In this document: positions 16,858 through 37,113 of the stretch, piece by piece
How the letters are laid out: every line of letters starts with the position of its first letter
Position numbering within the stretch: the stretch's first letter is position 1
Notes under the pieces: model-generated
Databases searched by the model: none
What the model saw: the letters and a program-made list of their open reading frames with translations, nothing else
What the model was told of the DNA's origin: nothing
Position numbers and translations under genes: made by a program
Origin: Monocercomonoides exilis PA203
Lineage: Eukaryota > Protista > Preaxostyla
Length of the DNA: 64,000 nucleotides
NCBI GenBank assembly: GCA_001643675.2
Contig: LSRY02000024.1
Location: forward strand, 1,240,001 to 1,304,000
Direction: 5' to 3'

Positions 16858-19800
16858 ATGGAAAGAAAAGTTGATGAAAAGATGAAAAAAATGATTATAC
16901 AGGAACTTATAACAACAGAAAGAAGTTATGTTGACCAGCTTGAAACGTTAATTGAAGTATTCGAAAAACCTATGCAACAGAATATGAAAGATTTAAAGTT
17001 AACACAAAGAGACATTAGATTGTTGTTTTCTGATCTTGATATAATTTTTCAGACAAATAAAATTATCCTCAACGCATTTGAAAAATGCTTAAGGCACGAT
17101 GCAAAGGGCATTGGAAATGTTTTTCTATCACTAGGCAGTTATCTTCGAGTATATTCCCCGTTCATTAACAATTTGTCCAAAAGTCAAGAACTTACAAATT
17201 ATCTGATGGAACGAAATAAGAAATTTCGCACATTTATCACGGAACAAAAGCAAAATGCGAGATGCAAAGGTCTTCCATTTCACACTATGATTGCGTTGCC
17301 CGTCCAACGAATACCAAGATATGAGCTCCTTCTAAAGACTATTTTAGAAAATACGAGCAAACTTGATCCAGAACGAAAAAATCTTGAAAGTGCATTTGAT
17401 AAAATTAAAGGAATTACAGTGGGTGTGGAAGGTTCAAAGAAGTTGCGCGATCAGGAAGATCTCCTTATCAAAATATTTGGTTTTTCAGGAGGGAGAAAAT
17501 ATCCTCGTTCGCTTTCTGCAAAATCAGCAGACTACGAGCCAGTTCTTGGAGTCCCTGACCCAGAAAGGATTATCATTCCTTCAAGGAGGTTTTTATATCA
17601 GTGCAAAGCCCTTTATGCTCAGAAGAAGCTGAGCAGAGCAAACGGCTCTGGAGCTGGTGGTGCTGGTGCACCTGCTGTTCTGGCATTAGACAGCAGCTGT
17701 GCAATGTTTGCGCAGATTTATGTGCTTTCAGATGCGTTTGTGGTGGCCCAGCAGACAGGAAAGGGAAGGATCTTCAGAGAGCTTGTACCACTTCACTTCT
17801 TTGTCTCTGCATCTGTCTCGTCTTCTCCTTCGGTACCATCAGCACAGGCATACTCATCTGCTTCCTCACTTCTGATGCTGTCATCTCCTATTCCATCATC
17901 TTCTTCAGCATCGGCATCATCATCTTCCTCAGCCTCCTCATCAGGAGTGCAAATGTCTTCTTCTTCTAATCGTGATGTGAATGAAATCAGTGTTGTTCTG
18001 CTCCTTCCAGCCTCGTTCTCCACACGAAGGCCAGGCGGCTCGCATCAAATGAGCAAGTTTTTGCACACAACAGACGAAGATGTGGAAGAAGCGTGGATGA
18101 CCAGCCAGACGCTGCAGATGGAAGATTATGCCGCTCAGTTGAGAGAAGAGGAGGGAAAAGGAGGAAAGAAGAAGAATCGAAAGGAAAGGAAGAGGAGAAA
18201 TGAAAGAGGAAGAAGATCTTCGGAACAAATAAGCGATGATGAAAATGAGTCTGAATCGGAAGAAGAAGAAGATGATGAAGAAAGTTATTATTCAAATTCC
18301 TACATGGATTATGATGATGATGATTCTTTTGAATCAGATGAAGATGAGCAAATTGCAAAGAGAAGAAGCAGAAGATCACCACTTCCAAGAGCGTGGCAAA
18401 AAAGTCCACAAAACAGAAGAGGGAAGAGCAGAAGAAGAAGTAGAAGTGCTTCAGATGGAGCGTCTTCTGAAGGAGTGGAGCCTTTCATTCGATACACTTA
18501 CACATTCCACATTGACAGCAACGAAGATGCTTTTGAGTTGAAACAGCAGATCGACAGTGTTGGTGCTGATCTGCGCGAAAAAAGAGCACAAATAGCACTT
18601 TTCTCTCAATCAACACAGCAGCCGAAAGAAAAGACAGAAGACGCTGCTGCAAGTCGTCTGCAAGGATTCACTTCTTCTTCTTCTTCCTCTTCTTCTCAAA
18701 TTCCACTTTCACAGCAGCCAGTAGCATCAGAAGAAGCACAGCGTGCTTTGGGTGATCTGATCCGCTCTTTAAAAGCGAACGAGTCGCGTTTTGTGAAAGC
18801 GATGGACATTTTGATCAAATGCTTCGTTGAACCATCGAAGAGACTGGTCGAAAGAAGGCAAAAAGAAGCAGAGAAGCGAAAAGCTGCTGAAATGAAAAAG
18901 GCAAAGCAAAAATCCAAAGTACAAGGAAAGTCCAAAGCGAATGCTGCTTCAGGCGCATTCTCTTCATCAGGCTCAGCATCCGGTGGAGGAGGTGCATTTG
19001 ATACAGAAGACATCTCCTTTTCAGGCAGCACACCAGACGGACACACAAACAGCATCACCAGCGCTGGCTATCCGACGGAACTGGACGCATCTGCAGTTGC
19101 GCTGCTGTTCAGAGAGATTCCAGACATCCACAGGAATCACACGCAGCTTCTGCAGCTGATCGAAGACGAAGAAAAAGCACGCAAAGCGAAAATGATGAAT
19201 GAGCCCAGCGCGATGAAAAGAAAGAGCTCTTCAAAACTTTTCAGTTTCCACAAATCTTCTCATTCTTCTGCATCTCCATTATCATCATCATCTTCTTCTT
19301 CTTCTTCCCACAATCGTGTTGGGATAGGTGGAGTATTTCTTCAGTTTGTGCCGTTTCTGAAGATGCTGAGCAGCTATCTTGCGCGTCGGCCAGAGCGGCA
19401 GGAGCTGCTGGAGAGCATCACAGCGACAGACGTGGAGTTCAGACAGATTGTGGCAGGCGCCGAGGCGAAAGGGGCAGCCCACGACGAAGGCGTGACGCTG
19501 GAGCAGCTGTTGGAGATGCCTCTCTTCCGACTGGCGATCTACTCAGCACACATTGCAGCGATGTATCAGTGTGCAGAGAGGAGGAGAGAGGCGCGACAGA
19601 CAGAAACAAGAAGAGACTCGCTTGAGTCGATTGCAACAGTCAGCTCTGTCTCTGCTGCTGCTCAAGGGTTTGGGGGAGAAGAGCCAGAAGACGAGAAAAG
19701 CGAGAGAGAGTGTTTGGCACTTGCATCACAGCAGCTGAGTCAGGTGGCCTTCGACATCGACGAGAAGGTCAGGCGGAGTGAGGCGCAGCAGACGCTCCAT

Positions 19801-21063
19801 TCAATCTGCCTGTGGGCTCAATGCACTTCAGCAGAGAAAGAGCGCATTTTGCAGCCTTCGCGGTATTTCGTGTGTGAAGTGGCTGCGACAGAAATTGGAG
19901 TGTCGCGGACGATGGCTGAGCCGTTTGAGATTCGCCTGGCTGAGGAAAGGAGCAGAGGGAGGATTGTGACAGTGGGCGTGGGAGAAAGCAGAGATGTGGA
20001 TGGAGATGAAGGTTGGGGTGAGAATTATGAACAGGAATGTAGATCTTCTTCATCATCAATGCAGGCTTCTCTTCTTCTGTCTGCCAAATCGACTGTGATG
20101 TCCTTGGAACAAGCACTGAAACTGCGCCAAGAGAAGATCGGAAAGCGAAGGCTCATGGAAGTGACTGATGATGATGCATCCAATGAACAAAGTGGAGAAT
20201 TGGTGATCGATCCGACATCTTCTGCATTCACTTCATCCTCTTCTTCTCATTCTTCTTCTTCTTCTTCTTCTTCTCGCAACACCGCCACATCACAAACCAC
20301 ATCACAATCCATGACACCTTCTCTTCGCAAAGAAGCACTTCATTCATTGAGCACCCAATTTCCATATCCTCTCTCGCACTTTGCACTCACCCCACACCAA
20401 CTGGCATGGAAGCGCTGGAGCGACAAAAGAAGGAGGCAGCGCTGCCGGCGGATTGAGAAAGACACCATCCTCACCAAGCAAGGCGTGCCTGTCTGGCTGA
20501 TTGTGGCGAATGACTGTCTACTTGTGTTTGAGATGCAGAGCAGAGGGGAAAGGATGGGCATCAGACACGCAGTGGATCTGAGGAAGGTGGAGAGTGTGGA
20601 GGCAGAGGCAGTTGCAATCAATTTGGGTGAAGAGAGAGAAAGGCTGTTTGAGGCAGAGGAAAGTGAGGGAGGTTCTTGTGCTGATGAAGACAGCATGGCA
20701 GGCAGTGCTGTTGTTGGGAGAGAGCAGCCAAATTCACACAGACACCGACATACACACAGTAGAAGCAATTCAAAACTCCGTTTCCGACATTTGAGAAGCA
20801 AAAGAAGGGAATTAATTAAAGAAAAAGTTGTTGCGCTTGTTCTGAGAATAGCACTATTCCAAAAGAGAGATTCACAAACAAAGGAAAGTGCAGTCAATTC
20901 ATTGCCTCCTCCAACTTCCCCAACTTCATCTTCTTCTTCAAAGGCATTTCCTCCATTTGTTGAAGATTCTCTTTGGCTGTCCTTTGCCTTTGACTCAGCA
21001 GAAGCACTGTCTCAATTTCGTTCGCAGTTTCTTCGAACAATCGATGAGTGCATTCATCGATGA
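16858..21063 (+). CDS. RhoGEF with tandem DH(-PH) modules
   Basis: DH1: ELITTERSYVDQL, LFSDLDII, IGNVF, LPVQRIPRYELLLK. DH2: LKANESRFVKAM, LFREIPDIHRNH, IGGVFLQFVPFLK, LLEMPLFRL. PH-like strands YVLSDAFVV and LIVANDCLLV. Single 1401-aa ORF. Confidence 0.9.
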   Translation: MERKVDEKMKKMIIQELITTERSYVDQLETLIEVFEKPMQQNMKDLKLTQRDIRLLFSDLDIIFQTNKIILNAFEKCLRHDAKGIGNVFLSLGSYLRVYSPFINNLSKSQELTNYLMERNKKFRTFITEQKQNARCKGLPFHTMIALPVQRIPRYELLLKTILENTSKLDPERKNLESAFDKIKGITVGVEGSKKLRDQEDLLIKIFGFSGGRKYPRSLSAKSADYEPVLGVPDPERIIIPSRRFLYQCKALYAQKKLSRANGSGAGGAGAPAVLALDSSCAMFAQIYVLSDAFVVAQQTGKGRIFRELVPLHFFVSASVSSSPSVPSAQAYSSASSLLMLSSPIPSSSSASASSSSSASSSGVQMSSSSNRDVNEISVVLLLPASFSTRRPGGSHQMSKFLHTTDEDVEEAWMTSQTLQMEDYAAQLREEEGKGGKKKNRKERKRRNERGRRSSEQISDDENESESEEEEDDEESYYSNSYMDYDDDDSFESDEDEQIAKRRSRRSPLPRAWQKSPQNRRGKSRRRSRSASDGASSEGVEPFIRYTYTFHIDSNEDAFELKQQIDSVGADLREKRAQIALFSQSTQQPKEKTEDAAASRLQGFTSSSSSSSSQIPLSQQPVASEEAQRALGDLIRSLKANESRFVKAMDILIKCFVEPSKRLVERRQKEAEKRKAAEMKKAKQKSKVQGKSKANAASGAFSSSGSASGGGGAFDTEDISFSGSTPDGHTNSITSAGYPTELDASAVALLFREIPDIHRNHTQLLQLIEDEEKARKAKMMNEPSAMKRKSSSKLFSFHKSSHSSASPLSSSSSSSSSHNRVGIGGVFLQFVPFLKMLSSYLARRPERQELLESITATDVEFRQIVAGAEAKGAAHDEGVTLEQLLEMPLFRLAIYSAHIAAMYQCAERRREARQTETRRDSLESIATVSSVSAAAQGFGGEEPEDEKSERECLALASQQLSQVAFDIDEKVRRSEAQQTLHSICLWAQCTSAEKERILQPSRYFVCEVAATEIGVSRTMAEPFEIRLAEERSRGRIVTVGVGESRDVDGDEGWGENYEQECRSSSSSMQASLLLSAKSTVMSLEQALKLRQEKIGKRRLMEVTDDDASNEQSGELVIDPTSSAFTSSSSSHSSSSSSSSRNTATSQTTSQSMTPSLRKEALHSLSTQFPYPLSHFALTPHQLAWKRWSDKRRRQRCRRIEKDTILTKQGVPVWLIVANDCLLVFEMQSRGERMGIRHAVDLRKVESVEAEAVAINLGEERERLFEAEESEGGSCADEDSMAGSAVVGREQPNSHRHRHTHSRSNSKLRFRHLRSKRRELIKEKVVALVLRIALFQKRDSQTKESAVNSLPPPTSPTSSSSSKAFPPFVEDSLWLSFAFDSAEALSQFRSQFLRTIDECIHR

Positions 21064-26644: not shown

Positions 26645-29600
26645 TCATCTGCTTTTTAGTGATTCTTCAGTGATTTCACTTCCTGCCACTGTCAAACCAT
26701 CAACACTTGCCCTTTCATCACTCATTTCTGTTGTTTCTTCCTGATCAATTGCATCTGATATTGTCACCATCACTGCTTCTCGAGGAAAGCGCTGGATGAA
26801 CTCTCGCTTCAGCTCTGTCAATTCCAGTCTGTCTTCTGGCTGAGCTGACAGGCAAGCCCGAATAATCTCAAAGAATTGCGATTCCTTCACGCCACATATG
26901 TCTGGTCTTTCGTGATTCGCCATCTTCTGTCCCGCCACCTCTGCCGCATACTCCCCAAACGGAATCTCTACCTTCAAGCACTCCCACAGCATCATCCCAA
27001 TCGAAAATGCCACTGACTTCTTTGTTGCTCTCATCTTCTTGTTCATCAGCAATTCTGGCGCCTTCCACATCAGGCATTCTTTTCTGAAGTTGTCCTCATC
27101 CTCAAACGCTGATGAAGGAAGAGAGTCACAATCATCATCGTCATCATCGCTTGCTGATGCTACAACTGTTGACGAAGAGATTGAAGAAGAGTCTGAATCA
27201 TCATCTGACAATAAATCAGAATGCATCACAATGCAAATGACCATGTGTTCCGAGAACAGCACAATATGAGGACTCAGATTGGCAAGTGATTGAAGATCAT
27301 CTTCCTCATCTTCAAACGAGTGAAGTGCTCCATTCGCTACCCAGAACAAAACCTGTGCAGCTGTTTGTTATCTTTCTTGCAAACTCCCAATTGCCATCTC
27401 CTTTTTCTCATTTCTTCCATGAAGCAGCATGAACAATGAATCCCTCAAATCCACAATCAATTTCTCATGAGGAGACGAACAGGCCATCACATCCACCAGA
27501 TTCGACATCGATGAGGTGGTTGGACACAGACTCTCTGATCGAACAAATGTTGAATCTGAATCAGTTGTTGAAGTGGATGAAATGGAAGGTGAAGGAGTTC
27601 TCTTTCTCGTTTCCTCCTCTTCTTCTTTTTCATCCACATTTTCCAATGCCCATTCAGGGATCTTGTCTGAGTCTTTTCCAAGAATATATTCAGTGGAGCC
27701 ACTCTCACTCAGCAAATGCTCTGATGACTCCGAATGTCCCAAGCTTTTCTTATACACCCTCTTCTTGATCCTTTCTTCATTCTTCTTCTCTGCCTCCCTT
27801 TCTGCTCTTCTCCACTGCTCCTCTGGTGATGGCTCCATTGTTGTCATTTCAATCAGCTTTGGATCCTTCCTCACAGTATCATTCACAATCTCTCTCAGAT
27901 CCTTCGCTTCATTCTTTGCCTTTCTCCATCTGAGTGCAAGAATAACAGAAACAATAAGAACAATTAAAAATGAAACAACAAATATAACTGCAATTGTCAA
28001 GACCCATGATTTCCCCATTTTTTCTCCTTCAGCCAATTTATCATTCGCTGTCTTTGGTTCTGTTTTGTTTTTTGAATCTGACATGAAGTTGATGACAATT
28101 GCTTTCCAAACGAAATCACCACTGACACCTCCGTCTCATCCCCAACGGTTGTTATCTTGTCTGAAGGAATCGTGCCTATCACTTCTGTTTCTAACACAAA
28201 ACTGTTTTCCTCAAATTCAAATGTTTCAACAAACTCCACATCCCCTGTTTTATACACAAGCCTGAACGACAAATTGCAAGGCAGCAGCTTCCCTTTGAAT
28301 ATAACCTCCATTTCTTCTCCTTTCTCCCTTGTTTCAACACTCTCCAACACTGGAATGAAGAATGGAGATGCTCTTTCTTCTGCTATCCCTCCTAAACTGC
28401 ATCCATCATTCAAAATCCAAAGCGAAAAATTGGGCATCACCCTGTCTCCTCCTTTCAAGCTCGAAATTGTCAGTGAAGCAGAATCTGAACAAATAATATT
28501 CCTCCGAAGAGAAGGATATTTTTCAATGAAAGGATTGTTATTTGCCAGCATTCCCATCTCGATTACAGTCTTTCCTCCTTTTATCGATATTCCTCCTTTC
28601 GATGAATTCTCTATTTTTATTTCAACCATCTGTAAATCGGAGTTTTCGGAATGGACGAGTGATCCATTCCATTCACAAATTTCTTCAAATGCGTTATCAT
28701 TCTCGGCTTCGCTTTCTTTGGCAACCATTCCTTCAAATTCACACATTTGCATCGAAACATCCTTTGCATTGTTCATCTCCATAATGCTTCCTTTGCTTGA
28801 CAGAGAATTGCAGCTTTCACAAGAACAATTTAAAAGAACGATTTCAGCAGAAGATGAAGAAGCAGAGAGAACAGAAGTTCCTTCCGAATTCCTCGAGCAG
28901 TTCTTGAATGAGGTGCTTCCAATAAAAATTGTTCCTGAGGTCGAACTGCTAATCTCAAGGATACAGCCTTCTGACAGCTTCACTCCATTTGCACATGCTC
29001 TATCAAACACAACACTTCCACATTGTCCAAGCTCAAAAACATTTGCTATTGATTCAATCTGTTCCAGTTTCATATTTGTCAACGATATCTCTTCCCCATT
29101 GAACACAAATGAAGGCTTCTTGAATGAAAGGAGAGATAGTGAGCAGTTGTCAATGTGAAGAATACCATTTTCGACGCTTAACAAAGTTGAATTGAGAATT
29201 ATTGCTTCAATATTTTCTGACTCTCCAACTGAAGAGAAATCAACAAATGATAAAGAAAGTTCCCCACTTGCTTCATGAATGATAGAACTTCCAGAATAAG
29301 AAAACGACTGACCAAAGTTGAATTTCAATCTCTCAATCCGAACTTTCTCTAAGGTTGTGAGAAGACTGCCCTCATTGAAATTAATTGTTGAGTTCAGATG
29401 CGCCAAAGCTCCTGAAGGAGATTGCAATGAGCTGATGGTTAAATCACGAGCATCACATTCTCTTTTGATAATTGATTCCTCTGAGATCAGGAGCTGTGAA
29501 TAAAATGAAGGAATAATATGTGTCACTCCCTCACTCATTGATTGGCATGGCGTGTTAAACTCTCCACATTGCTTGCTGTCTGTGTGATTGTCTGCAACTG

Positions 29601-32577
29601 AAGACACAAATATCGCCTCGCTCTGATATATCACAATCCTTAGCAGAAGATCTTCTTCATCCACAAACGAGTCTGTTGTGCAGCCCCACATCGCCAGCTC
29701 CTTCACAAACGGTGTTCTGAAATCCAGCAGGAATTGCTCTTCAACTATTTGTGCATCAATTGAGCGGCATCGAACATACACATCTCTCCCTCTCAATGCA
29801 GAGTTGTCTCTGAATGTGATATTCAACAGCACAAAATTCAGTGGCTGCTCAACCACCGTGGTGCATTCCAGAAACAGCCATCCGCCTCTTCCTGTGCTCG
29901 AGCAAAAGCACTCAGAAATCGTGCAAAATGAGCAATCAAAGTTTCCTCCCTCATTCAACACACAAAACATCCCTCCTCCCTTTCCGCACCTCGTTCCACC
30001 ACACTTCTTCATCGTTGTGTTTCGTATCACCATTTTCAAAGGCTCATCATTATCATTCCGAATGATGGGAATATCATTGGTTGTGTTCTGGGTTACTTCT
30101 TCGAATGAACTCCACTCAATTACAACATCTTGTTCAATTTCATTTTTTTCTCTCCTTGAACTCTTTGCTATGTTCAATCCGCTTGCCCCATCCAGCTCAA
30201 CATTCTTCATCGTCAGGTTTTTGATGTTCAATGTTGTTGTTGGCAACACAGAAATAACATCCTGTGAAAAGCTCAACAATTGTATTGTCACAAAGTCCAA
30301 CACAACTGAACCTCCTTCTGCCTTGATAAGCCCATAATGTATCACTTCTTCTCTGTCATCTCCTTTCTTGGTGAATGAGCAGTCTTTCACAGTCAATAAT
30401 CCTTCGCTTGATCCAACATGCATTAAATAATTGACTCCAATTGTGAAAGATGATGGAATCGCAAAGCGAATCAGTTCGAACTGCGTGATACTCTGAATCT
30501 TCATTACCATTCCTTCTGTTCCTTCAAGCGATGAAACACATTCAAATGAACACATTTCTGAATTATTTGAGCTTATTGAAAATCCGCTAACATCAACACT
30601 TTTCCGAAGATATCCTTTTACAATGATGATCATATTCTTTTTATTTCATTCTGACAATCTCATTAACGAATAGTCAATTGACAAGCAAGGATAATCTGAG
30701 AATCCACAGGCACCCATATATCTTCCTTCGCTGCCAATAAAAATCTCTGAGACGAGTGAGAGCCAGAAATAAATCAGCGGAATGACATTCGTTGTATCAT
30801 TTCCATCAAAGCCTCTCAGGGAATTCAATGAAATATCTGCCAGGTGTTCGAGCACAAATGGAAGAGAAATGTTTGTGATGCTCTTCGTCAAATTCGATGA
30901 TTCAACAAACACATCATTTCCATATTTCGCAACATTTGGCTTGTCTTTATCGAAAGTGGGGGATGATATCACAAATGAAGAATCGTCATCAATCACTTTC
31001 AGTGCAATCCCTCCCCCAAACCCAATTTTCCGTTCTTCTGCTGGTGCTGTGCATCCTGTGAATGTGCATGAAATAACATTCAATTGAGTATTCCCTTTCA
31101 ATTGAGCATTGATAGCCCCTCCTCTGCTTCCATCAGCAAAAACAGAGCATCCATCAAATTCACATTCTTCAATATTAATTTCTACATTTGAATTTTCATC
31201 ATGGCTGTTGTCAATGCTCACACAGCTTCCACTTCCGGCTGCTCTTTCTATTTCTGTGAAATTGCTGTTCGTCATGTTCAACCACAGAGTGTTCATCAAC
31301 TCGATATTTGTTCCACTTCCAGACAATGAGATCAATGGATTTCCGCTCAATATGATTGAAGAAACCGAAAATGAATCAATAACCAAGGTTCCAGATTCAA
31401 CAGATAAAATCAGAAATGACAATTCTAATGATGGATCTTGAAGAGAAAGAGAACAGTGAGATATCGTCAGTATCGATGAAGAAGAAGAAATGAAAGTTGA
31501 ATGTGAATGAGACGGAGGAAGAGAGAAGATAAGTATCGATAATTCTGTTTCAAAACTTGTTATCATCGCTGGGTTTAATGATGAAGTTGAATCGGAGACT
31601 GTCCAGCCACTTTCATCATCATTTCCTTGGATTTCATGTTTCTGTCCAGCAAAATCCAATTCATCACTCATCGAAATCATTCCACTCACAATAATTTTCT
31701 TTTCTCCTGTTTGTCTTATGAGAGAATGCTTCAAGGTCAAACAAGGAAACTGGATAATCCCACAGTGAGAATGGTCAGATGCCTCGGAATTGCTCACATA
31801 TATTGCTGTTGGATTGGGAAGGAGATAAATACACAGTGGGATGGCCACACTCGTATTTCCATTGTCATATCCTCGCACTTTGTCAACAGAATCTGATGAT
31901 GAGGTTACACATGCAATTTTTCTTGAAGTTGCAGTTTCTTCCAGATTGGGCGATAAGACGAAGATGTCTCTTCCCCATTTGGCCGTGTTTGTGCCAAAGG
32001 AAGAAGAAATCAAGAAATCTGGATTTTCATTCAATAATCGAAGAAGGATTCCTCCCCCTAGTCTGTACGATGCAGAGCAATAGCACCCATCAAAAGATCC
32101 GCTTTTCACTTTCACTTCATTCTCATTCCCTGCACACAGCATCATTGATCCTCCATCAACTGATATTGTGCTTCCACATCCTTCAAAGGTGCAAGAATTC
32201 AGATCAATGTTTGCTTTGTCATTCGAAAACGATATCACAGCTGCTCCGCTCGTTGTTCTTTCAATTTCATCAAAGGCACAGAATGAAAGTATCAAGAAAA
32301 TATCATTTGTCGAAGAAAGCGAAAACAACGAAACAGTGGATAAAGTTTTTGCCCAGTTCACATTTTCCATCTGAAACATGCCATTCTGAACATAAATCAG
32401 TTCTATCAAAAATGCTGTTTCTGTTGATTGTTCGCTCCCAAAAGATATATTCAATCTCCTTATTGATATTTCCCTTGGTCCTGTAATCTCAAATAGCCTT
32501 GAGGCTCGATTATTTGCAAATGTCGAGTCATGCACGATGGTGAGGTCACTGATGGATAAAATGCTTGCCAAAAACAA
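26645..32577 (-). pseudogene. Pseudogene of a large surface protein / receptor-like pseudokinase
   Basis: Beta-helix/Cys-motif ectodomain, TM (WVLTIAVIFVVSFLIVLIVSVILALRW) and kinase-like C-lobe (WKAPE, VAFSIGMMLWECL, IPFGE, CL...PEDR). Lesions: in-frame TGA 30646-30648, frameshift near 28080, in-frame TAA 27368-27370, and a 5' end cut at an A-rich microsatellite. Confidence 0.85.
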
Positions 32578-32624: not shown

Positions 32625-33254
32625 TCGGAGTTTACAAATTCTATTTGCTCCGTTCTACTTTTGTCATTTTGATGCAAACAAAATAAAAAAGTATGCCCCA
32701 GGTCGTATGAAAAGGCACTTTCCGAAAAAAAAACAATTAAGATTGCATGCCCGTAGGTGTAATTCCGTCTTCTCCAAAAAATATTCTATTTGCATGAACA
32801 TGAGTGCAATTCAAATTATCTAGTGCAGAAACTGAAAAAAATACATCCAAAAACAAATTTTGAAATACAATTTTCTTGAATTATTAAGCATGTTTGCATT
32901 GAACAGAGTAATAACAGTTCCCGGTATTTTTGTGGGAAATATGACAAAGGAGCATTTGGTTATCAAACAAATCTTGTTCGCTGTTTTTCAAAACTTTTAT
33001 TTTTCTCATAAACAACGTATTTCCTCATTTCAGCCGATGGATTCCAGCAAATATATTCTATTGCCAAAATGCTGTTCACAAAAAACAGCAAAACGAAATA
33101 AAAAGATAATCATCAAACGAATGAAGGTTGAATTTTGATCGATCTGATCCGAAAGCCATATTAGCGAATCTGATCTTCCGGATTTTTACGAATCGACTGC
33201 AAACGCTGTTTTTGAATCCGCCTGACGGATCAGAACTGCAGGGATATAGAGATA

Positions 33255-35300
33255 ATGAGTTTTCAAAGAGAAATACAAAAAGAAGGATTTGAAAAAACGA
33301 AATGCGATCCAACAACCAAAGATAAGGAAGGAAGGACCGAGGCAATGAATTGGATCATAAAAAACAGAACAGATCCTCCAGCACATATGATGCACGATAT
33401 AACACTTGGAGATAAAGATGGATCAACAATGGCAATGCTCTGGATTCAAGAAGTTAAAGCAGAGCCACCATTGTGGATGAGGCATGGAATAACGCTTGGG
33501 AATAAAAATAAATGGACGATGGCAATGTTCTGGATTGGGAGCGTGAAAAAAGAGCCGCCGGAGTGGATGAGACATGACACCGCTCTGTGTGATGCTATGG
33601 GATGGACGATGGCCATGGTGTGGATTTGCTTTGTGCAAACAGAGCCACCAGAATGGATGAGACATAAAGAAACACTTAAAGATAAAGACAGATGGACGAT
33701 GGCCATGCACTGGATAAGATATGTTAAATCAGAGCCACCACTGTGGATGAGGCACGATAAAACCGTTTGCGACACAAATGGGTGGACGATGCTCATGCTG
33801 TGGAAAATATTTATTGAAGCAGAGCCCCCAAAGTGGATGACTTATGATAATGCACTTGGTGATGAAGATGGAAGAACAAAGGCGATGAACTGGATCATCG
33901 ATAAGAAAGCAGAACCACCGCTGTGGATGAGACATGACATCACACTTGGCAATAAAGACGGATGGACGATGACGATGTATTGGATTGCTGTTGCGAAGAC
34001 AGAACCACCAGAATGGATGAGACATGACATCACACTTGGCAATAAAGACGGATTCACAATGGCCATGTTGTGGATTATATTTACCCATGCGGAACCGCCA
34101 GAGTGGATGAGACATGGCGTTTCACTTGCAAATAATAAAAAAGAAACAATGGCAATGCTGTGGATTCGTGATGTTAAAACGGAACCACCTGCATGGATGA
34201 GACACGAAAGCGCATTTGCAGATGATGACGGATATACAATGCCTATGTGGTGGATTCAGTTTGTTCAAACAGAACCTCCAGAATGGATGAGACATGATAT
34301 TTCGCAAAAGAATAATTGGGGGAAAACAGTGGCTATGATGTGGATAGAGAATACGAAAACAGATCCACCAGAATGGATGAGACACGATATTACGCTTCGT
34401 AACAATTTCAAATCAACGATGGCTATGTTGTGGATTCAGTTTGTTCAAACAGAACCGCCAGTCTGGATGAGGCACGAAATTACACTTACCAATAAGAATG
34501 GGTGCACAATGGCCATGCACTGGATTCGATATGTCAATTCAGAACCACCAGAGTGGATGAGACATGAGAAAACACTTGCTGATAGCAAAGGAAGAACAAT
34601 GGCTATGGTTTGGATTGAATATGTCAAGACAAACCCACCAGAATGGATGAGACACTACAATGAGCTTGCAGATAAAAACGGAAAACCAATGGCCATGAAA
34701 TGGATTGCATATGCGAAGACTGAACCACCAGAATGGATGAGGCATGGTTATTCGTTGAAGGATACGAATGGGAGGACGATGGCGGATCATTGGAAAAGTA
34801 ATGTCAAGAGTTCACTACCAGAATGGGTGAGACATGATATAAAACTAAGTCAAAAGGATGGCTGGACAATGGTAGATTGTTGGGAAAATAGTGTCAAGAG
34901 TGAACCATCAGAATGGATGACACATGACAAAACGCTTGATGATAAAAATGGAAGAACAGAAGCAATGCGATGGATCGTTGAGAAAAAGGAAGAACCACCT
35001 GAAAAAATAAGGCATGACATTAAGCTTTCAGATAATAACGGGCAAACCATGGCCATGCTATGGATTTTTTGGTTGAAATCAGAACCGCCAGAATGGATGA
35101 GACACAGCATCACCCTTTCTGACAAGAATGGAAGAACAATGGCCATGCACTGGATCAAGCAAGTTAAAACAGATCCTCCTACATGGATGAGACACGACAA
35201 AATGCTTTGCAATAAGAGTGGATGGACAATGGCTAAACTCTGGGAATTCTTTGTTCAGACCGATCTACCAAAATGGATGGAGACTGATAAATCCGCATGA
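33255..35300 (+). CDS. Tandem-repeat protein: 22 x 30-aa Trp/Met-rich ankyrin-like units
   Basis: Intact intronless 681-aa ORF = 26-aa leader + 21 x 30 + 25. Consensus xTMAMxWIxxVKTEPPEWMRHDxTLx(D/N)KxG. The motif tggatga recurs every 90 nt. Confidence 0.9.
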   Translation: MSFQREIQKEGFEKTKCDPTTKDKEGRTEAMNWIIKNRTDPPAHMMHDITLGDKDGSTMAMLWIQEVKAEPPLWMRHGITLGNKNKWTMAMFWIGSVKKEPPEWMRHDTALCDAMGWTMAMVWICFVQTEPPEWMRHKETLKDKDRWTMAMHWIRYVKSEPPLWMRHDKTVCDTNGWTMLMLWKIFIEAEPPKWMTYDNALGDEDGRTKAMNWIIDKKAEPPLWMRHDITLGNKDGWTMTMYWIAVAKTEPPEWMRHDITLGNKDGFTMAMLWIIFTHAEPPEWMRHGVSLANNKKETMAMLWIRDVKTEPPAWMRHESAFADDDGYTMPMWWIQFVQTEPPEWMRHDISQKNNWGKTVAMMWIENTKTDPPEWMRHDITLRNNFKSTMAMLWIQFVQTEPPVWMRHEITLTNKNGCTMAMHWIRYVNSEPPEWMRHEKTLADSKGRTMAMVWIEYVKTNPPEWMRHYNELADKNGKPMAMKWIAYAKTEPPEWMRHGYSLKDTNGRTMADHWKSNVKSSLPEWVRHDIKLSQKDGWTMVDCWENSVKSEPSEWMTHDKTLDDKNGRTEAMRWIVEKKEEPPEKIRHDIKLSDNNGQTMAMLWIFWLKSEPPEWMRHSITLSDKNGRTMAMHWIKQVKTDPPTWMRHDKMLCNKSGWTMAKLWEFFVQTDLPKWMETDKSA

Positions 35301-35573
35301 GTGTTTGCTTATTTGTGTTGGATGTGTCGTTTTCGATGCTTTCAATGAATCAGCTGATTAACATGTTTCTCAATAAAGGCAATTCCACAGCCTATCGAAA
35401 TGCATGATTATTCTTTCTTTTGAAGTGACTTTCTATCTTTCTGCAAACACTCGGATATTCTTCAAGCAAATATCAGTTTGATAGCCTATCTATTCTTTAT
35501 CAATTATTTTTTTTTTCCTCCTCATTTTATCTCAGCAATTTAAGCGTTTCATTTCATTTCTTCTTCTTCTCTT

Positions 35574-35723
35574 TTTATTTTATGTTATGTTATGTTATGT
35601 CATATTATATTATATTATATAATTTTATTTTATTTTATTTTGCTTAGTTTAATTTTGTTTTGTTTTGTTTTGTTTGGTTTGGTTTGATTTTGTTTGGTTT
35701 TGTTTGGTTTTGTTTGGTTTTAA
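35574..35723. repeat. Compound pentanucleotide microsatellite
   Basis: In-phase 5-mers tatgt > tatat > tattt > tgttt > ggttt, about 30 units. Confidence 0.92.
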
Positions 35724-36054
35724 TTTTTTACAAAATAATTTAAATAATTTTTATTTGATTCAGTTTACAATCATAGAAAAGCTCAATATGAATCTCTTTC
35801 TCTCTTTTTCTTTTCTTATTTTCTTTTTCAATTTGTCAATGTGGCAAATGGATACAATACCGGTACATCAGAATTGACTTTATTTTATGATAAAAGTATT
35901 TATCATAGTGTAATATCTATTCATACAAAATATCAGAGTGAGGAAATGATTCTATGTTGAAACAAATATTTTTCAAAGAAAATAAAAAATTGGATTGGGA
36001 CATATATTTATTAAAATTTCAAAATAAATAAAACTGTCGATTATATTGGAAAAA

Positions 36055-37113
36055 TTATACTGAAGGGCTGCATTCAGTCGAACTTTCTTCGTCTCCTGAT
36101 CCAAGTGGATCAAAATCATCATCATTTTCGATTTCAGGAAGAGTGTCACCTGCATCTGGGATTTCCTCTTCATCCATTTCTTCTATTATTTCATTTTCAT
36201 CTTCAATCAATTCATCAAGTTCATAATGAATCAAATCTTTCATCATATCTTTAAACTGAAGCTTCAATGAACTTTTAACCAAAAACAATGTAATCTGATC
36301 GGCGAGATTTTTAATTCTCATTCCTGACTGAGGAAAGGATGACCATAAATGCTTCCATAACCCTTCAATTGTGTTTGTGCAAGCCTTATTCTCTTTATTG
36401 AAGAATTTCCGCTTGTGGCAGACTGTTTCATGTAAATAACCAAACGTACTCAAACATTGGAAAGCTTTCCATTTGTCAGAATATATCTTTGTTCCGAATT
36501 TAAGGTGATCCAGAATTATTGGAATCAGTGTTTCTTTGGTTCTGTCAGGAACAATCATCATAAATCTGTCGCCATCTCCTCCACCTTCCAACCTTACGAC
36601 TCCTCCAATAATCCAAATCAATTTCTTCTTTTTTCCTTTATGGTATTTCCTTCTTCTCCAGACTGCTTCGTCTATCTCCACAATCTTCCCCTCTCCTCCG
36701 ATTTTGGCTGGTTTCTGTTCCAAATCCGCATGCAACAGCACCTCATTACACTAGCCCAATATGATTAAGTTTTTCTATTCACGGACAATTAAATTGAAAC
36801 AGTTTTGATTAGGATTTTCAACCATAGATATAGTAAAACAAGAAAAGCAACTCAAAGGGGCTTTTTCAAATTTTCGAATACTGTTCCTTCATGAATTGAA
36901 CTCTTGAATTTTCTGTAACTTGTGCAAATACAATATCTGTATCATTCTTCCTTTCTGCACATTTTATTTTTTTTTTTTGCGAATTTGCCATATTGTTGAA
37001 ATAACATCTTGTTGAATAGTGAAATTTTAATTCCACGATTTCTTTTCATCATGAAATGTGAGACTCATCAATGATATTGTTCTATCTTTAAAGATCAAAT
37101 TTGGTTCAGCCAT
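36055..37113 (-). mobile_element. Merlin / IS1595 (ISXO2-like) transposase, N-terminal part decayed
   Basis: The catalytic ORF 36055-36741 has IGGEGKIVEIDE, RRKYHKG, WIIGGV, GTKIYSDKWKAF, HETVCH and CTNTIEGLW, followed by an acidic tail. The upstream region is broken by stops and shifts but keeps SIHEGTVFE..KPL..LYLW. Candidate ATG at 37111-37113. Confidence 0.9.

Follow-up and report, generated by a model that had tools for sequence, protein, structure and literature searches.

What kind of protein is encoded by an open reading frame (ORF) that consists almost entirely of 22 copies of a short Trp/Met-rich unit, in which a fixed framework is combined with positions that differ from copy to copy? 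This question is raised by the intact ORF at 33255-35300 (+), with an ATG start and 681 amino acids (aa), in a 64,000-nucleotide stretch of the genome of the mitochondrion-less protist Monocercomonoides exilis PA203 (GenBank assembly GCA_001643675.2, contig LSRY02000024.1, positions 1,240,001 to 1,304,000; hereafter the window). A preliminary description, made from the letters of the window alone, had taken the ORF for one continuous array of a shortened ankyrin-derived repeat that offers a diversifiable surface for defence or ligand reading. The results presented here lead to a different answer in part: with a probability of roughly 70%, the product is a soluble, cytosolic shortened-ankyrin-repeat protein that serves as a stand-alone adaptor or scaffold and binds other proteins via its variable face.

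The repeat unit and its predicted fold

When the protein was cut every 30 aa from residue 23, 22 in-register units without a single insertion or deletion were obtained (the last unit is 29 aa), which confirmed the earlier count of 22 units of 90 nt. Tandem Repeats Finder reported the same 90-nt period with a DNA identity of only 67-81%, indicating that the regularity is maintained at the protein level. Among 30 paralogues from the same genome (82,301,135 bases in 101 contigs were searched), 594 of 613 anchor spacings (97%) were multiples of 30, so the period is 30 and not about 33. The encoded motif E-P-P-x-W-M-R-H, carried in its exact form by about 70% of the anchored units, was found 1260 times genome-wide compared to 0 times for the reversed control, which excludes chance as an explanation for the motif.

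The units were numbered with the D of DxxG as position 1 and conservation was pooled over 560 distinct units from the 30 paralogues. Ten positions (T6, M9, W11, I12, P19, P20, W22, M23, R24 and H25) were conserved in 92-100% of the units. G4 was present in 87%, T6 in 97% and D or N at position 1 in 87%, which is the ankyrin register, but with the ankyrin P-L-H replaced by M-A-M. The entropy was 3.1-3.5 bits at positions 3, 5, 10, 13, 14 and 30 and 2.6 bits at position 2; the variability noted before at positions 5, 10 and 13-14 was thus borne out, and positions 2, 3 and 30 vary as well. The residues in these slots are subject to preferences (Arg 22% and Trp 21% at position 5; Tyr 19% and Phe 18% at position 14). 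Positions 10, 13 and 14, spaced i, i+3 and i+4, fall on the face of helix 7-15 opposite to the conserved positions 7, 8, 11, 12 and 15. Judging from this periodicity and from the equivalent ankyrin positions, the variable slots would be exposed on the concave face formed by the hairpin and helix 1.

Units 7-16 (ten units) were modelled with AlphaFold2 using an alignment of 48 in-register paralogue fragments, which gave a mean predicted local distance difference test score (pLDDT) of 95 and a predicted template modelling score (pTM) of 0.87. Each modelled unit begins with a loop and the helix at 7-15, continues with the loop that contains the two prolines and with a single helical turn at 21-23 (HHH in the DSSP assignment), and ends in a further loop. 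The inner helix is thereby 9 residues long, and after the Pro-Pro turn DSSP assigns a one-turn helix only, at E-W-M. In a Foldseek search against the PDB only ankyrin-repeat proteins were found on top (E = 4e-8), and VIA-align placed 290 of the 300 residues on residues 467-793 of ankyrin-1, i.e. ten units on ten repeats (Z = 17.9, root-mean-square deviation (rmsd) 4.2 A). An exhaustive PDB search that was independent of Foldseek (48,161 chains) returned ankyrins for all of the top 50 chains (Z = 17.5-10.8), with superpositions on solved ankyrin domains at rmsd 3.9-4.2 over 290-291 residues. Similarly, a shape search of the ESM Atlas matched ankyrin clusters only (template modelling score 0.72-0.82 across all 300 residues); the model that the Atlas itself provides and the language-model features also pointed to ankyrin. 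These results support an ankyrin-type solenoid as the predicted fold, with the three missing residues located in the outer-helix segment. The earlier suggestion of a shortened ankyrin-type solenoid with EPPEWMRH in the place of helix 2 is therefore upheld by the models, in which the alignment runs unit for unit and the segment forms one turn of helix.

Modular organization and expression of the gene

The scaffold had been called nearly invariant, and this holds for its core positions (92-100%), but 7 of the 22 units break it in a systematic manner. In units 1, 7 and 19 M7 and V15 are changed to polar residues, and in units 6, 17, 18 and 22 M9 and/or I12 are changed to polar or charged ones (in unit 1, M7 is replaced by E and V15 by N; in unit 6, I12 is replaced by K and R24-H25 by T-Y). 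Units of the first kind (N-cap type) open nearly every paralogue and units of the second kind (C-cap type) close them. Given that the same unit types open and close the paralogues, the breaks are systematic capping units and not noise. The cap units and the junction model described below indicate that the array is composed of three capped modules of 6+12+4 units, contrary to its description as one continuous solenoid. The coding sequence and the parts deduced from it are as follows.

33255..35300 (+): coding sequence, 681 aa, coordinates including the stop; 81 kDa, pI 7.0, Met 9.1%, Trp 7.6%
33255..33320 (+): N-terminal 22 residues, outside the repeat register
33321..33860 (+): putative module 1, units 1-6 (residues 23-202); N-cap, four internal units, C-cap
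33831..33860 (+): predicted hinge between modules 1 and 2 (residues 193-202), at a dip in the AlphaFold2 pLDDT
33861..34940 (+): putative module 2, units 7-18 (residues 203-562); N-cap, nine internal units, two C-caps
34941..35297 (+): putative module 3, units 19-22 (residues 563-681); N-cap, two units, C-cap; common to other paralogues

Junctions at which a C-cap is followed by an N-cap occur likewise in at least eight other paralogues, and in two the junction is filled by a degenerate 30-residue linker. An AlphaFold2 model across the first junction had a mean pLDDT of 91.6, which fell to 57 at residues 193-202 and was 71-79 over the preceding 30 residues, and the pTM across the junction between modules 1 and 2 was 0.58 compared to 0.87 for the uninterrupted ten-unit stretch. 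The combination of high local pLDDT and low pTM fits two well-folded domains of uncertain mutual orientation.

The gene is expressed, since RNA contigs cover it and the flanks are silent. The RNA evidence consists of assembled contigs from four RNA-library runs of one study, from which strand and level are not derivable. The contigs tile 33170-35546 with 0 mismatches and start at 33168-33171 in all four runs; almost no contig covers 32828-33169 and most of 35564-36000 is bare. Silent flanks make it unlikely that the RNA contigs represent DNA carry-over, and the cover of the gene and not of its flanks answers the question of expression raised in the preliminary description. Joints that link repeat units in some RNA contigs are attributed here to cross-assembly between paralogues rather than to splicing. 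Two transcribed parts outside of the coding sequence can be listed.

33170..33254 (+): 5' leader of the transcript, 85 nt, from the start of the RNA contigs; no ATG within
35301..35546 (+): 3' untranslated region, minimum extent; RNA contigs could be followed to 35546, before a simple repeat

Several RNA contigs extend 225-317 nt past 35546. A (TTTTA)n/(TTTTG)n simple repeat is present at 35573-35721 in the 3' flank and hampers the placing of the 3' end of the transcript.

Neither a signal peptide nor a hydrophobic N-terminus or membrane-like segment was found in the 681-aa protein, and from its sequence the product would be soluble and cytosolic. It begins with M-S-F, unlike at least eight paralogues (L008, L010, L006, L025, L026, L028, L029 and L017) that start with M-G-N; two of these fit the PROSITE myristoylation pattern, and a myristoylated, membrane-tethered subfamily among the M-G-N paralogues is possible. 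Two Pfam matches on the ORF, YycE-like_C and UBA_7, were rejected as spurious low-complexity matches, and an Rfam scan of the window gave no match.

Paralogues, selection and relatives outside the genome

More than 200 stretches matching the family were found in the M. exilis genome, which yielded no fewer than 60 open frames, 500-1661 aa in length. The paralogues are all-repeat proteins of 15-54 units, and the 30 best loci consist of repeats end to end with no other domain. Based on the motif count divided by the share of units with the exact motif (about 70%), the size of the family is estimated to be 1,800-2,000 units in 70-90 genes. It is an intronless, all-repeat M. exilis expansion of roughly 70-90 genes. 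On one contig (C80) at least 23 family genes, about a third of the listed members, are located at intervals of tens of kb between about 44 kb and 1.05 Mb. The loci L016 (C53) and L019 (C94) are near-duplicates on small contigs with an in-frame TAA in part of the matches and may be haplotigs or decaying copies.

The abundant families discussed in the M. exilis genome papers are kinases, GTPases, cysteine proteases and thioredoxins, and the repeat family is mentioned in neither of them (PMC8767320, PMC6759080). One of these papers puts the repeat share of the assembly at 46%, for the most part unclassified (PMC8767320). The repeat motif was not found in the literature searched either, and together with the absence of a matching Pfam family this agrees with the initial impression that the array belongs to no named family.

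The three modules of the ORF have different relationships within the family. The terminal modules of L005 (contig C37) and L009 (C80) share 89% and 79% identity, respectively, with module 3, and the best match of modules 1 and 2 among the paralogues is at most 65% identical. The 5' flank resembles only that of L023 (86% over 641 nt); for the 3' flank the only similar one is that of L015 (81% over 269 nt). Given that the flanks and module 3 match different paralogues, the gene is a mosaic, and these identities suggest that modules have been exchanged between paralogues. A mobile unit with shared flanks was considered and rejected, as each flank matches one paralogue only. For 79% of the units the nearest relative was found in another gene, which indicates that the arrays are not homogenised internally.

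Selection was examined as the ratio of nonsynonymous to synonymous differences per site (pN/pS) in nearest-neighbour unit pairs, and in a second run only scaffold codons were used to choose the neighbours. Purifying selection on the scaffold is strong: pN/pS was 0.02-0.13 at the most conserved core positions (T6, A8, M9, W11, I12, M23, R24 and H25) and about 0.25 when all scaffold positions were taken together. For the slots pN/pS was 0.46-0.87 per position and 0.68 when pooled. With scaffold-chosen neighbours the slots gave 0.65-0.73 relative to their own synonymous rate and 1.0-1.35 relative to the all-site synonymous rate. No positive selection at the slots was demonstrated by pN/pS (about 0.7, close to neutral), and the per-position calculation proposed at the outset thus revealed no excess of amino acid changes. 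Among the 30 loci there was one independent low-divergence collinear pair of paralogues, which is too few for a site-level test.

A word-index homologue search yielded a single relative. When 1.84 billion representative proteins were searched exhaustively with the profile, 261 relatives were identified at E <=1e-3, of which 156 at E <=1e-10. Ten relatives that were looked up were metagenome or Logan records, with one contig clearly eukaryotic. The profile search that had been suggested therefore found metagenomic relatives, but no named family beyond RING and Ank_2 in the 114 relatives scanned with Pfam (RING in 12 and Ank_2 in 9). The Ank_2 matches fall on the same repeats that are matched by the family profile, and the Ank_2 gathering score was passed by two relatives. 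Among the relatives the repeat period varies between 28 and 33, which makes the canonical length and the 30 of M. exilis parts of one continuum. The closest relatives outside the genome, P0001-P0004 (profile E values 1e-88 to 1e-64), carry a similar array followed by a C-terminal RING finger. No RING was present on the same polypeptide in the ORF or in the 30 paralogues examined, and the RING matches of the genome, obtained with the RING tail of P0001 as query, do not adjoin repeats. In two other metagenomic relatives, P0006 and P0058, the 31-aa repeats are preceded by an N-terminal region of about 240-390 aa that is not repetitive and has no Pfam match. The contig of P0006 (L052) is compact, of eukaryotic type and codes for NifU_N, and we read its source organism as one other than M. 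exilis.

Elsewhere in the window, a 228-aa ORF at 36055-36741 (-), about 750 nt downstream of the array, contains an ISXO2-like/IS1595 DDE transposase domain (Pfam E = 1.4e-13) and looks like a fragment of a DNA transposon. Upstream, two adjacent ORFs at 27997-30633 (-) and 30646-32577 (-), of 878 and 643 aa, have recurring Cys/Gly-rich segments without a Pfam match, which recall the beta-helix repeats of the 'polymorphic membrane protein' type. The 1401-aa ORF at 16858-21063 (+) has an N-terminal RhoGEF (DH) domain (E = 3e-55) and is an ordinary eukaryotic signalling gene, which serves to mark the window as eukaryotic.

Possible functions and comparison with known systems

Ankyrin domains generally bind proteins through their concave face. 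For the protein described here the same mode of binding is suggested by its predicted fold, by the location of the slots and by the capping. Each unit would keep the ankyrin hairpin (DxxGxT) and inner helix (TMAMxWIxx), would have a Pro-Pro turn and one helical turn (EPPEWM) in place of the outer helix and a core of Trp, Met and Ile, and the units would stack as a curved ankyrin-like solenoid. Of the seven free positions per unit, some belong to the hairpin, others to the exposed side of the inner helix, and one is the final residue; by homology they would line the concave binding face and give each paralogue a different protein-binding surface. The three separately capped modules (6+12+4) would be connected by flexible links, with modules having been exchanged between paralogues. 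The protein might then function as a stand-alone adaptor or scaffold or in trans, possibly feeding ubiquitin ligases, and the RING-fused relatives suggest a role in the recognition of substrates for ubiquitination.

Several observations weigh against this interpretation. Both structures are predictions, the exposure of the slots is based on helix periodicity and ankyrin equivalence and not on coordinates, and binding via the variable face is predicted by homology. The RNA evidence consists of assembled contigs of one study and not of raw reads, and the M. exilis members examined are without a RING or other effector domain. With respect to sequence, no ankyrin model was matched by the 681-aa protein in Pfam even at E = 10. 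No ankyrin chain was found when the family profile was compared with the PDB sequences, and the protein alone and the family profile gave only chance matches to Ig domains in these sequences. Also, hhalign of the family against seven two-repeat canonical ankyrin fragments from the same genome gave a probability of 1%, although this ankyrin profile was very thin and the result is weak either way. The register in that alignment was hairpin on hairpin as expected, though not significant. Given that the direct profile tests fail, ankyrin homology rests on the predicted structure and on the intermediates, and the Ank_2 scores of the latter are sums of weak repeats that are barely above the cut-off. 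Descent from ankyrin repeats is therefore likely but not proven.

If the repeat had arisen independently and converged on the ankyrin shape, its rigid 30-aa period, its Trp/Met core, the lack of the TPLH signature and of a second helix and the missing direct profile link to ankyrin would be accounted for. Such an origin is very unlikely in view of the DxxGxT hairpin, which stands in the ankyrin register and is placed in that register also by hhalign (not significantly), of relatives with periods of 28-33, some of which are at the Ank_2 cut-off on matching repeats, and of the fact that no other repeat family was found in any search. It is hardly conceivable that the ORF is a non-functional repeat, i.e. 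a degenerating or selfish frame in repetitive DNA. The IS1595-type transposase fragment 750 nt downstream, the repeat content of the assembly (46%, mostly unclassified; PMC8767320) and the in-frame stops in a few paralogues are compatible with such a frame, but the 2-kb ORF is intact, over 60 frames of paralogues (500-1661 aa) are open as well, purifying selection acts strongly on the scaffold, RNA cover is confined to the gene and the flanks are not common to the paralogues, as they would be in a mobile unit.

The most plausible competing explanation, though one we consider unlikely, is that of a structural or cytoskeletal scaffold resembling the Giardia 'protein 21.1', in which the arrays would act as spacers or springs on the axostyle, the flagellar apparatus or membranes and the slots would be unconstrained surface. 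All-repeat proteins of 15-54 units, slots that evolve near neutrality, the small number of canonical ankyrin matches in the genome (at least 34) and the possible myristoylation of the at least eight paralogues that begin with M-G-N are all consistent with this idea. The slot preferences (Trp 21% at position 5; Tyr+Phe 37% at position 14) disfavour pure neutrality, and short capped modules resemble discrete binding domains more than springs. The preliminary description had instead envisaged a diversifiable defence or ligand-reading protein, that is, an innate-immunity-like repertoire in which selection would diversify the slots for the recognition of viruses, mobile elements, bacteria or host molecules. 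Dozens of paralogues that have a common scaffold and differ in their surface slots, the richness of these slots in Trp, Tyr, Phe, Arg and Lys as in binding sites, the shuffling of modules between genes and the slot amino acid change of 1.0-1.35 relative to all-site synonymous change would agree with this proposal. On their own synonymous rate the slots are at 0.65-0.73, about 0.7 per position and not above 1, and thus about neutral. The paralogues are only 55-60% identical with most nearest units in other genes, indicating an old expansion without rapid turnover, and there is no effector, signalling or death domain in the protein and no defence-type neighbour was seen. No support for a defence role was found, and we consider the repertoire improbable. 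A more speculative possibility, to which we attach still somewhat less weight, is a natural, intracellular counterpart of a library of designed ankyrin repeat proteins (DARPins), in which capped cassettes are shuffled to obtain new specificities, e.g. for marking foreign or aberrant proteins for RING ligases in trans. If true, this DARPin-like repertoire would represent a type of germline-encoded recognition system that is undescribed in protists.

For the preferred reading, a stand-alone adaptor or scaffold of the shortened ankyrin type, three consequences follow. The ankyrin fold would tolerate the loss of most of the outer helix and a Trp/Met core with stacking maintained, which is relevant to repeat-protein design and to annotation. 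A predicted fold can be assigned to about 70-90 'hypothetical' genes missed by Pfam, and the family, which comprises some 0.2 Mb of coding DNA, accounts for a portion of the 'unclassified repeat' content of the M. exilis genome. The RING-fused relatives, finally, suggest that substrates may be captured for ubiquitination.

Compared with the ankyrin repeat (Pfam clan Ank: PF00023, PF12796 and further families; e.g. the 24-repeat membrane-binding domain of ankyrin-B/R), the M. exilis unit has the same DxxGxT hairpin leading into the inner helix and the same predicted stacking and curvature. Variation is likewise concentrated in the hairpin and where helix 1 ends, and the capping units likewise exchange core residues for polar ones. 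It differs in its rigid period of 30 instead of 33, in the Pro-Pro turn and single helical turn predicted in place of helix 2, in TMAM for TPLH, in a core with two Trp and three Met per unit and in being unseen by Pfam. P0001-P0004 share the EPP-x-W-M motif and the TMA-x-WI helix, and are distinguished by a period of 29, shorter arrays of about 10 units and the RING domain. In metamonads large lineage-specific families that are nearly all ankyrin are represented by the Giardia 'protein 21.1' and the Trichomonas ankyrin expansions, with canonical 33-aa repeats that are recognised by Pfam. These are alike in their almost all-repeat make-up, which does not imply orthology.

A close parallel is provided by the DARPins. 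In the module designed by Binz et al. in 2003, positions 2, 3, 5, 13, 14 and 33 were reportedly randomised. The randomised positions of DARPins form a concave paratope (PMC8229355, PMC8683736). Both systems combine a fixed, self-compatible framework with variability at positions 2, 3, 5, 13, 14 and the last residue and with capping repeats, whereas the M. exilis family is natural, far longer and multi-module, has an extra slot at position 10 and is only predicted to bind. The M. exilis repeat is, in conclusion, no new class of system but an undescribed, Pfam-invisible offshoot of the ankyrin fold.

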